Positions 39,674 to 51,281 of a DNA stretch of 64,000 nucleotides are shown here, piece after piece. Source of the DNA: Fimbriosthenelais zetlandica. Its lineage: Eukaryota. Below the pieces are notes generated by a model, which was not told the origin of the DNA, searched no databases, and saw only the letters and a program-made list of their open reading frames with translations. The stretch lies in the NCBI GenBank assembly GCA_977030845.1, contig OZ365111.1, forward strand, positions 46,190,001-46,254,000. Direction: 5' to 3'. Made by a program: the position numbers and the translations under genes. The stretch's first letter is position 1. Every line of letters begins with the position of its first letter.

Positions 39674-40058
39674 TTAAACCCTTGTAGGACCTCTCCCGTT
39701 GTCAATATACTTGACGCCGTATTTAGCTTGTTGGGCGATCTGCTTCATCCTCGTCTTGATAAAAAGATAAAGTAAAATAATCAGTCCTACTAGGAGAAGA
39801 ATAGATATTCCAAGGAAGACCCACATCTGGGTTTCATAGCTAGTCTTTGCTGGCTCGTCTCGCTGATGTGCTGAATGGGTCTTCGCCTTCTTCTTTAATC
39901 GAGGGATTAAGCCATTCCAGAAGGCCACCTTGTCTGCCCGGAAGTTCTGTTTGATGCCGATGGCCCCCTGGGAACTCAAATAAAGGTACTCCTTACTGGT
40001 GTTTGTGTACGGCGTCCAGTCAATGTGTATTGCACCCAGCTTTGTTGGCGTAGGATGT
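39674..40058 (-). CDS. Esterase exon 10 (KVAFWN helix, short stalk, TM helix about 39758..39826, 27-aa tail ending GPTRV, stop)
   Basis: ttttcattcag|A; phase 2; 23-residue hydrophobic run [23 protein letters not shown]. Confidence 0.93.
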
Positions 40059-49000: not shown

Positions 49001-51281
49001 ATTCCATGAGGGCCTGCATGTAGCTGTTCTCTTTCTGAACATGTTTTGTCCATGTCAGAAATCTAGTATGCGTATATCATATCAATGACTAGTTTGAAAT
49101 ATCCCATGAGTTTGTTTTCAAAATTACCTTATCCTTATACATTCATTTAACTATACAACTCAAGACATGTCTTGATTTAATCAATTAAATGTTACTAAGC
49201 TTCCTTCTAAGTTCTAGTACGAGTTAAGTGTTTCTCGCGAACGCCGGAAGCACAAGCAAAACAAACTACGAGAGAATTGTTTAAACCCAGCCCAGAGATT
49301 GTGAAAATGGACACCCCCATTGTCACGTGCATACATGAAGTGCAAGTTACCAACCTGGAATGGTGTGTAGACATCTAGATATAAACAGTCCTCATTCTGG
49401 AAAGTAACGTTAGTTCCAGGGTGGTATACATCCATCTGGGGGCAGACCCAGCCATGCTCGCGGGCACTCCTCACCCCACTCCAAGGCTCAGGGTCTTGTG
49501 GAGGCTGTGTGGGTGAGAGAGAAAAATAATGATAATGAATGCCAAATAGACACTACAATCAACATTGACTAAATCACAGACAAGTCCATTGTCCTCTCAA
49601 GTAAACACATTTTTGTTGGTTTTCACACAGGATGCAAGACTTTGCTCATGCGCGATGGTTCGAAGGGCTTAATATCTTTGGCAATAAATAAATACAAGGG
49701 AATACAAGTGAATATATAGAAGAAGGTGAGATGTTTTCGATAGAGATTTTAATGTAGATATGATATAATGTGGTTTAAAAGTAGTATAACTCGTAATAGA
49801 GCTGTTTTGATGGATAACATTTAATATCTTTTTTCCTATAAATGACAATTTCCTATATATTTTAGATACACTATCTGTGAATCTATGTCTGGGGTTACTA
49901 TGCTATTACTATGCCGAGTTAAGGAAAAAACCAAGTTCAATTCACAGTAAAATAGTTTCTGCATCCCAGTCAGGTGTGGCTGACTGCTTAACAAAGGCCC
50001 GTAGAATATTGGACCCTGCCCTCTGTGAACTAGTGTTACAAAGGCAAGGAAATTCCCGTGGAACATTTGTTTTATACGTCTCAGTGATGAATAGGTAAAA
50101 AAAGAAGCATTGAGAAGGGGACAGATACGTGACCCACCACACTCAAATATGCCGGAGACAGATGAATAAAAAGCAAGTGACACTCCTATTAAGTTGACTT
50201 CCTAGGCCATACACAGTTCACTTGTATCGTATCATTTCCCTTTCTCATTTATTATGGATTCCATCGTTGAATGGCAAATACACAGGGCTGATATGTGTCT
50301 ATATTTTCAAAACGTTCTGCTTGTATAGGGTCTATGTCCGTACAAGTATATATAGGTGTATGTCCTTTCATTTCGATAACAGGAACAGGCCTAAGAAGGG
50401 GATCTATGCTCCTATATGGTTTAATCAGGGAAATATCTACATGTACTTGCATAAATGGAGAAAAAGGGCACATGATTGGCAGGTTGGTTTATGCAACTGG
50501 TAATTATCGGTATACGACAGGATCTGAAACCGTTGAACCTGAAACCGCTACATGGGGGTGTGGCTTTATATCAGATGATCTTAAAGTGTTTTTAACATTT
50601 CATCAGATGTTGCAAACTCACGTCTTAGACTTTGATAGTTAGATCACATAGGAGATAGTTTGCAAAAATATATGTAAGAGAAGCATAGCTACCACCTGCA
50701 AAGGGGTAAAACAGGAGCGGTTTTAGGCAAAAGTACTGATTAAACTCCAGCATCAGTCGCATGTTTTTATGAAACAACTCTCAGGTTAGAGCCAATTTCA
50801 AAAAGCTTATAAAAGGTGGCAGGTAGAATAGAGAGATGTAATGTATATACACACCTCAAACCTCAGGTCGTTTACAGGGGGTGCAGCAAATGGTACGCCA
50901 AGGAATGTGTCCACAACATTCGTTACACTGTCTAAAAAAAACAAAATGGAAAAAAATGAATACCGAAATTAACCATGACTGCTGGTATTAACGAACACTT
51001 CTAATAGTATTGTCACGCTTTTTAATCAATTACATTTTTATTGTTTCAGGAAACTGCACTGCATCAGCCATTGTTAAGTCTGATACACTGCATTGACATT
51101 TCTTCTGAAACGGACCCATGAAACGTCGCTTACCTTCGCCAAGTGAGTAGTTATAGATTCCTCGTTTTCCTGCTAACTTTCCATAAGGTGTTTCAACAAT
51201 AATCTCCGTGTGTTGTATCGGTAGTACCACATCAGCCGTTAATAATAATACCATAAAAACCGTGAGGGGAGCAGAGACCAT
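39674..51281 (-). CDS. Neuroligin-like type I membrane carboxylesterase/cholinesterase-family protein, 625 aa, 10 coding exons
   Basis: complement(join(51134..51281,50855..50931,49355..49504,43819..43966,43108..43293,42378..42571,41897..42038,41132..41310,40530..40798,39674..40058)) = 1878 nt, open, all introns GT-AG. Motifs: [64 protein letters not shown], a TM helix and C-terminal TRV. Confidence 0.93.
40530..40798 (-). CDS. Esterase exon 9 ([10 protein letters not shown] .. [13 protein letters not shown] with the catalytic His .. WTNLAKY)
   Basis: tgtttttag|TTG ... AG|gtaaga; phase 0-2. Confidence 0.94.
40944..40998. mobile_element. Second, left-truncated copy of the palindromic mini-element, in esterase intron 8
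   Basis: Aligns to 38312..38370: gaatatt..agtcataga.ttagcattgctaa..tattcctttt.aaaca.gtccca. Confidence 0.65.
41132..41310 (-). CDS. Esterase exon 8 (DNYFNGG .. IVRYEYTDW ..)
   Basis: ttttctctag|AT ... GCG|gtaggt; YTDW motif shared with neuroligins; phase 1-0. Confidence 0.88.
41897..42038 (-). CDS. Esterase exon 7 (FRPIVDG .. GTVRDE with the catalytic Glu)
   Basis: ttccag|TTT ... G|gtgagc; phase 0-1. Confidence 0.93.
42378..42571 (-). CDS. Esterase exon 6 ([13 protein letters not shown] .. [15 protein letters not shown])
   Basis: attgcag|GT ... TGG|gtgaga; translated by hand, not in the ORF track; conserved FxxAIxQSG and a Cys pair. Confidence 0.92.
43108..43293 (-). CDS. Esterase exon 5 (GNYGLLDQ .. 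nucleophile elbow GHSAG at 43151..43165)
   Basis: attgcag|GC ... G|gttggt; phase 1-1. Confidence 0.95.
43819..43966 (-). CDS. Esterase exon 4 ([12 protein letters not shown] oxyanion loop .. NYRLGAL)
   Basis: tttcag|AGA ... G|gtgagt; phase 0-1. Confidence 0.95.
49355..49504 (-). CDS. Esterase exon 3 ([28 protein letters not shown])
   Basis: cacacag|CCT ... CAG|gttggt; carboxylesterase type-B EDCLYL signature; phase 0-0. Confidence 0.93.
50855..50931 (-). CDS. Esterase exon 2 ([26 protein letters not shown])
   Basis: ttttttag|AC ... GAG|gtgtgt; conserved [13 protein letters not shown] motif; not in the ORF track. Confidence 0.92.
51134..51281 (-). CDS. Esterase exon 1: signal peptide ([21 protein letters not shown]) plus [10 protein letters not shown]; the exon starts at 51301
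   Basis: Acceptor ttttctgtag| at 51302, ATG at 51281, donor GAA G|gtaag; phase 1. Confidence 0.88.

Follow-up and report, generated by a model that had tools for sequence, protein, structure and literature searches.

A gene on the minus strand of a 64,000-nucleotide stretch of Fimbriosthenelais zetlandica DNA (contig OZ365111.1, positions 46,190,001 to 46,254,000; hereafter the window) encodes a type-I membrane glycoprotein with a cholinesterase-like ectodomain. We consider this protein, which lies outside the canonical neuroligins and is conserved in three phyla, to be probably an active carboxylesterase tethered to the membrane. A first-pass annotation of the window had presented it as a neuroligin-type protein retaining a complete Ser-Glu-His catalytic triad and possibly serving as a PDZ-anchored ecto-esterase. 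Our results support the retention of the triad and place the protein outside the neuroligin clade. A membrane-tethered serine carboxylesterase or acyl-transferase is its most likely nature because the serine elbow and the oxyanion hole are conserved, the sequence is under purifying selection and the contact surface is enzyme-like.

To define the gene we listed the open reading frames (ORFs) of the minus strand from 39.6 to 51.5 kb of the window and translated this strand in three frames; exon mapping guided by two homologues (P0014 and P0036) followed, after which the junctions were read. All the motifs quoted in the first-pass annotation were found among ten minus-strand coding pieces. The resulting gene (51281..39674) has 10 exons, with GT-AG borders in 9/9 introns and consistent phases, and its coding sequence of 1878 nt yields a protein of 625 residues. 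When nine exon-sized ORF pieces were compared with Pfam, 8/9 gave a match at E ≤ 0.01 and 7/9 matched COesterase (PF00135), the piece with the nucleophile elbow doing so at E 8e-27. The last-exon piece matched DUF5321 alone, under the cut-off. An intron-less Logan contig (L001, 2.9 kb, sample ERR14707600) encodes a protein, P0050, that is 91% identical to the window protein. It aligns with the window in ten blocks whose ends are the modelled exon ends, from which we conclude that L001 is the spliced mRNA of an orthologue in a related species. This transcript also ruled out an upstream in-frame ATG at 51404 as the start, since it carries an in-frame stop 7 codons before the Met equivalent to 51281. 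The gene call for P0050 (L001:506-553) begins at the second ATG; as an upstream in-frame Met restores a normal signal peptide (M-V-F-F-P-L-I-V-L...), the orthologue should have about 622 residues and not 613. Comparison of the window gene with L001 yielded a nonsynonymous rate (dN) of 0.051, a synonymous rate (dS) of about 1.3, which is near saturation, and a dN/dS of 0.039 (0.034 for the ectodomain). From residue 601 to the C-terminus 24 of 25 positions are identical to the orthologue, the sole change being Arg to Gly at position -1. The gene is real and intact, and in a close relative it is transcribed and under purifying selection. A tandem paralogue was sought within the window and none was found.

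All the exons lie on the minus strand. Exon 1 (51281-51134) contains the start codon (51281-51279), which is backed by the orthologous transcript, the signal peptide and the beginning of the esterase domain. Exon 2 (50931-50855) carries a motif of 10 residues, and exon 3 (49504-49355) the first disulfide loop (Cys96, Cys115), which is short and devoid of Trp. The HGG of the oxyanion hole (43924-43916) is encoded in exon 4 (43966-43819) together with the NYRLGALG motif, and the nucleophile elbow G-H-S-A-G in exon 5 (43293-43108), where the codon of Ser220 is AGC at 43159-43157. A motif of 11 residues and the second disulfide (Cys275/Cys286) come from exon 6 (42571-42378). The acid residue, Glu347 (GAA, 41903-41901), is found in exon 7 (42038-41897), as is the equivalent of the neurexin-contact stretch of neuroligins, here esterase-like (T-K-V-P). 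Exon 8 (41310-41132) has a YTDW motif. The catalytic histidine, His445 (CAT, 40690-40688), is in exon 9 (40798-40530), preceded by a loop that is shortened by about 15 residues relative to other family members. Exon 10 (40058-39674) encodes the domain end (a stretch of 13 residues), a stalk of about 24 residues, a hydrophobic 21-mer (residues ~580-600) that forms the transmembrane helix, and a cytoplasmic tail of 24-27 residues ending in G-P-T-R-V, with T-R-V and the stop at 39685-39674 (stop codon 39676-39674). The triad codons proposed in the first-pass annotation agree with this model to the base, its HGG is indeed intact, and the single helix and the C-terminal TRV that it reported are both present in the 625-residue product, which has a type-I single-pass topology.

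In the protein, a signal-like hydrophobic N-terminus precedes a full carboxylesterase type-B domain, which a single transmembrane helix connects to a short tail. It contains seven N-x-S/T N-glycosylation sequons, the two Cys pairs stand at conserved disulfide positions, and there is one further Cys. HGG (residues 140-142) and Ala221 provide all the elements of the oxyanion hole, and Ser220, Glu347 and His445 fall in the triad columns of an alignment of at least 200 family sequences. For homology, fold and structure searches we used P0050 as a proxy for the window protein. It matches Pfam COesterase end to end (E 3e-125), and its AlphaFold2 model (predicted local distance difference test score 90.6) includes a long C-terminal helix spanning residues 559-599. 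With acetylcholinesterase (AChE) and butyrylcholinesterase (BChE) the window protein shares the fold (TM-score 0.73-0.75), the triad, the oxyanion hole and the first two disulfides. In contrast, its first disulfide loop is 8 residues shorter than that of AChE and lacks the choline-binding Trp, so that it is not a strict cholinesterase. It also lacks both Cys of the AChE-type third disulfide, and it has its own transmembrane helix where AChE and BChE are anchored by glycosylphosphatidylinositol (GPI) or by ColQ/PRiMA. The third disulfide of the vertebrate-neuroligin type is likewise missing. We rejected the missing AChE-type disulfide as a character shared with neuroligins, as cnidarian, mollusc and insect esterases and CEL lack it too.

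We ran homology searches seeded with P0014, P0050 and a family profile. Matches of the profile search came mainly from vertebrate NLGN4 clusters and from esterases with two tandem domains, and its word filter missed some profile members; a search of representatives with the last exon, which supplied P0014 and P0036, gave mostly single-exon ORF fragments and is not a family-wide sample. The relatives recovered include six full-length proteins from Logan transcript assemblies (P0047-P0052), proteins of the annelids Owenia, Capitella, Dimorphilus and Ridgeia and of the nemerteans Tubulanus and Lineus and, at a greater distance, of the molluscs Liolophura, Dreissena and Babylonia. Together with the window protein they form a clade of 16 full-length members, in which annelid sequences surround the window protein. 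In an alignment of 223 sequences (the window model and 222 homologues), 16/16 members of this clade have retained Ser, Glu, His and HGG. The suspicion of the first-pass annotation that triad-bearing relatives are widespread among invertebrates is thereby confirmed for annelids, nemerteans and molluscs. It had also stated that canonical neuroligins have Gly at the nucleophile, and this holds for every one of the neuroligins in the alignment (at least 30, from vertebrates, arthropods, tardigrades and hemichordates), which mostly keep Glu and His. The named family proteins of nine genera are 31-40% identical to P0050 and share with it the triad, the transmembrane helix and a short tail, whose last residue is mostly V or L. 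Unlike some of them, the window protein belongs to an annelid-type subclade with a shortened loop before the catalytic His. This deletion (window 40688-40740, minus strand; residues ~430-445) is found in the window protein, P0050, P0051, P0047-49, P0052, Dimorphilus and Ridgeia, whose loop has lost about 15 residues that Owenia, Capitella, the nemerteans and the molluscs retain, as do all other clades. The loss of this stretch may reshape the active-site gorge.

We surveyed the C-terminal tails of 41 family members, comprising full-length proteins and last-exon ORFs with the end-of-domain motif and a transmembrane helix. Most of them (34/41) end in V, L or I, with V in 20 of those 34, and most have Pro at position -4, while Thr or Ser occurs at -2 in 10/41. 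The T-R-V of the window protein and the T-G-V of its nearest orthologue both fit the class-I PDZ consensus S/T-x-V. The first-pass annotation had likened TRV to the STTRV of vertebrate neuroligins. TRV is not conserved, given the TGV of the 91% identical orthologue and the scarcity of Thr/Ser at -2. The conserved feature of the family is P-x-x-hydrophobic-COOH and not a copy of the neuroligin S-T-T-R-V; such an end could bind PDZ domains, with the ligand class varying, or act as an export signal based on the C-terminal valine. The family tails extend 8-37 residues past the helix, and P-x-x-V/L/I-COOH is kept across phyla, the remaining tail not.

What we infer beyond these observations concerns the activity of the protein, its location in the cell and the role of its tail. 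The signal peptide would send the carboxylesterase type-B (cholinesterase-like) domain into the secretory pathway, where it would face the cell exterior or an organelle lumen, held by the single helix and the short cytoplasmic tail. The domain would most likely work as a serine esterase or acyl-transferase, with Ser220 as the nucleophile, His445 and Glu347 as the charge relay, and Gly141, Gly142 and Ala221 forming the oxyanion hole. Its ester substrate is probably not of the choline type. The P-x-x-V/L/I end, T-R-V in this protein, would probably serve in sorting or anchoring, either through a PDZ protein or as a C-terminal-valine signal for export from the endoplasmic reticulum (ER). A precedent for the architecture is offered by the CEST enzymes of C. 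elegans, carboxylesterases that are membrane-anchored and depend on their triad (PMC7641594; PMC12931606). The PDZ-anchored ecto-esterase of the first-pass annotation is a plausible version of this scheme.

Several observations weigh against an active, tethered esterase. Catalysis is a prediction for every member of the family, and the register of the triad is read from alignment columns. Inactive vertebrate neuroligins retain Glu and His as well, which leaves Ser alone as diagnostic of catalysis. The residue before the nucleophile is His, where most active members have Glu (in the family His, Gln, Asn or Ser take its place), and a deletion of about 15 residues lies beside the catalytic His in the annelid-type subclade. 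Searches for RNA and DNA sequencing runs listed none for Fimbriosthenelais zetlandica, and the transcript evidence comes from the related species. Finally, the closest architectural precedent, the nematode enzyme CEST-9.2, was inactive in vitro as a recombinant protein (PMC12931606).

The relation to neuroligins was then examined by similarity, trees and site comparisons. With signal peptide, cholinesterase-like ectodomain, one transmembrane helix and a C-terminal S/T-x-V, the window protein shares the body plan of NLGN1-4, insect Nlg1-4 and C. elegans NLG-1, as well as the lack of an AChE-type third disulfide and the K-V-A-F-W..L-x-P-x-L domain end. Neuroligins are its best matches in the PDB and Swiss-Prot, by sequence and fold. 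In phmmer searches of the PDB, exon 9 matched NLGN4 only and exon 10 had NLGN2 on top, and a vertebrate NLGN4 was the best non-family BLAST match and the best single-domain profile match. Foldseek with the P0050 model placed neuroligin structures at all of ranks 1-20 (E 5e-55, versus 1e-49 for BChE), with equal TM-scores for neuroligins and cholinesterases (0.72-0.75). Protein-language-model features, which we treat as a lead only, put P0050 nearest to 'acetylcholinesterase-like' enzyme clusters, with neuroligin clusters behind.

Phylogenies gave a less uniform picture. The family adjoins the neuroligin group in a FastTree phylogeny (support 88) and in a first IQ-TREE analysis (LG+C20 with posterior mean site frequencies, PMSF; support 67/89). 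In a second careful tree, from which five long-branched rows were left out and to which a fish CES domain was added, the link between the family and the neuroligins was broken and the backbone was unresolved. The phylogenetic closeness anticipated by the first-pass annotation is hence found in two trees and is lost under other sampling. The annelid and nemertean core of the family has a support of 100/99, with molluscs joining at 71/87 and 97/79, and ecdysozoan and vertebrate neuroligins form a 100/99 clade without the family. Constraining the family to group with ecdysozoan neuroligins costs 49 log-likelihood units and was rejected by the approximately unbiased (AU) test (p 0.0016); this is the grouping to be expected if the family were simply the spiralian orthologue of neuroligin. 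Constraining it to group with canonical neuroligins as a whole was not rejected (p 0.16). The homology searches returned no Gly-type neuroligin from an annelid, mollusc or nemertean, and the trees contain neither such sequences nor true AChE/BChE, gliotactin, neurotactin or CEST sequences. A common shift of constraint among Gly-type proteins could also draw these together in trees.

For the neurexin-contact stretch we took Q395-D402 of NL1 (the L-N-x-D motif, numbered as in the NL1 literature), placed on P0227 (NLGN1) by subtracting the 20-residue insert A. Here vertebrate neuroligins read G-E-F-L-N-Y-D and the window protein G-N-F-T-K-V-P, a pattern seen in ordinary esterases, those of bacteria included. 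At the position of NL1 D402, the vertebrate, arthropod and hemichordate neuroligins sampled retain Asp and the tardigrade row has Gly. In the family this position is Pro in the window protein and in about half of the rows, and Asp in none. NLGN1 (P0227) has a stalk of about 80 residues and a tail of about 125, as opposed to about 24 and 24-27 in the window protein. Membership in the neuroligins fails on four features: nucleophile, clade placement, neurexin-contact residues, and stalk and tail length. Of the neuroligin-type label of the first-pass annotation, what stands is the ranking of sequence and fold matches; what does not is the inclusion in the neuroligin clade. As a description of overall similarity and body plan, 'neuroligin-like' holds.

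The Ser-bearing, anchored spiralian clade might be the surviving sister lineage of neuroligins in the enzyme state, or even the 'neuroligin' that earlier surveys counted in annelids such as Capitella. We regard this as unlikely. Were this reading true, the transmembrane anchor and the PDZ-type C-terminal ligand would have preceded the loss of Ser and the gain of neurexin binding, and the family would be a living model of the transition from enzyme to adhesion protein.

An enzyme confined to an organelle is, in our estimate, quite unlikely too. The protein would be an acyl-transferase of the endolysosomal or secretory lumen, not of the cell surface, comparable to the CEST proteins of C. elegans; it would synthesise or trim small esterified compounds, for instance signals, pigments or lipids, and its C-terminal Val would be an ER-export or sorting signal instead of a PDZ ligand. 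CEST-1.1, -2.2 and -9.2 are built in the same way: a signal peptide precedes a COesterase domain that bears the triad, and a C-terminal transmembrane helix is followed by a very short tail. This layout is catalytic rather than adhesive, and the CESTs are enzymes of lysosome-related organelles that need the catalytic Ser (PMC7641594, PMC12931606). They are anchored by the C-terminal helix and require this residue in vivo (PMC7641594), and CEST-1.1 with the S213A change no longer yields its products (PMC7641594; PMC12931606). The family C-terminus, P-x-x-hydrophobic and not a strict S/T-x-V, also agrees with such a sorting role. However, the likeness to CESTs is one of architecture, our sample having no CEST sequence; CESTs are nematode proteins with CES1 and BChE as best human homologues, and a conserved P-x-x-V end is not reported for them. 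Inspection of the tail by eye revealed no classical Y-x-x-hydrophobic or di-leucine lysosomal motif, and cellular location is not readable from sequence.

We find it harder still to accept a dual-function neuroligin that keeps its esterase activity and has neurexin as its extracellular and PSD-95/Dlg-type PDZ scaffolds as its intracellular partners, a state that would document the enzyme-to-neuroligin transition. The leading position of neuroligins in the phmmer/PDB (exons 9 and 10), BLAST, single-domain profile and Foldseek matches, the two trees with the family beside the neuroligin group, and a strongly constrained tail whose T-R-V and T-G-V fit the class-I PDZ consensus are all consistent with it. 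Yet the sister relation is weak (67/89) and disappears with other sampling, the union with ecdysozoan neuroligins is rejected (AU test), the Foldseek TM-scores do not separate neuroligins from cholinesterases, and the neurexin-contact positions are not conserved, with no family row having the D402 Asp. A tail of about 25 residues is also too short for the gephyrin-binding and other motifs of neuroligin tails, and Thr/Ser at -2 is a minority state in the family. The enzyme-to-neuroligin transition proposed in the first-pass annotation has a low probability.

A non-catalytic binding protein, in which the triad would persist for folding or ligand binding in a receptor or adhesion role with a partner other than neurexin, is the least credible of the alternatives: Glu and His do persist in inactive neuroligins, the residue before the nucleophile is His, Gln, Asn or Ser and not Glu, and a deletion lies beside the catalytic His in the subclade of the window protein, but Ser is kept in 16/16 members over three phyla and lost in every canonical neuroligin of the set, the oxyanion Gly-Gly and the Ala after Ser are retained, and the ectodomain has a dN/dS of 0.034.

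Neuroligins are a textbook example of an enzyme fold recruited for cell adhesion, and we know of no description of the intermediate steps of this change. Spiralians carry a conserved family that combines the neuroligin body plan (ectodomain, anchor, short tail and C-terminal Val) with an apparently working catalytic centre. If active, these proteins would be a second independent example of membrane-tethered type-B carboxylesterases besides the nematode CESTs; if they are the sister group of neuroligins, they would provide a tractable system for finding which changes went with the abandonment of catalysis. For now, the protein is an ordinary, though uncharacterised, member of the esterase family, with an architecture already known from nematode CESTs.

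Family members are already present in public databases as unstudied predictions, and our search of the literature found no account of spiralian neuroligin-like proteins with a triad. The databases name the family members variously as neuroligin-2/3/4-like, acetylcholinesterase-like or carboxylic ester hydrolase, an inconsistency that can distort the tally of synaptic genes in these phyla. Neuroligin names of invertebrate database proteins are unreliable. Coral proteins auto-named 'neuroligin-4, X-linked-like' (P0213, P0226, P0238 and P0242) keep the catalytic Ser and have a hydrophobic C-terminal stretch, which raises the question of a GPI or membrane anchor. The hemichordate 'neuroligin-4-like' proteins P0107 and P0119 have a Gly nucleophile and did not join the ecdysozoan and vertebrate neuroligins with support.

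Within the esterase gene, intron 3 (43967-49354, 5.4 kb) precedes the HGG strand and intron 5 (42572-43107) lies at S-A-K|G-L-F-Q. These introns may fall at the alternative splice sites A and B of vertebrate neuroligins, and they could be intron positions shared anciently with them. Elsewhere in the window, a neighbouring gene is represented by one or more large coding exons at 29778-31435 on the plus strand. Its ORF at 30302-31435 (plus strand) ends in an SH3 domain (PF00018, E 5e-12), has a second SH3-like stretch at residues 113-149, and includes a degron-like repeat, D-S-G-I-D-S-G-L-D-S, at 30410-30439.

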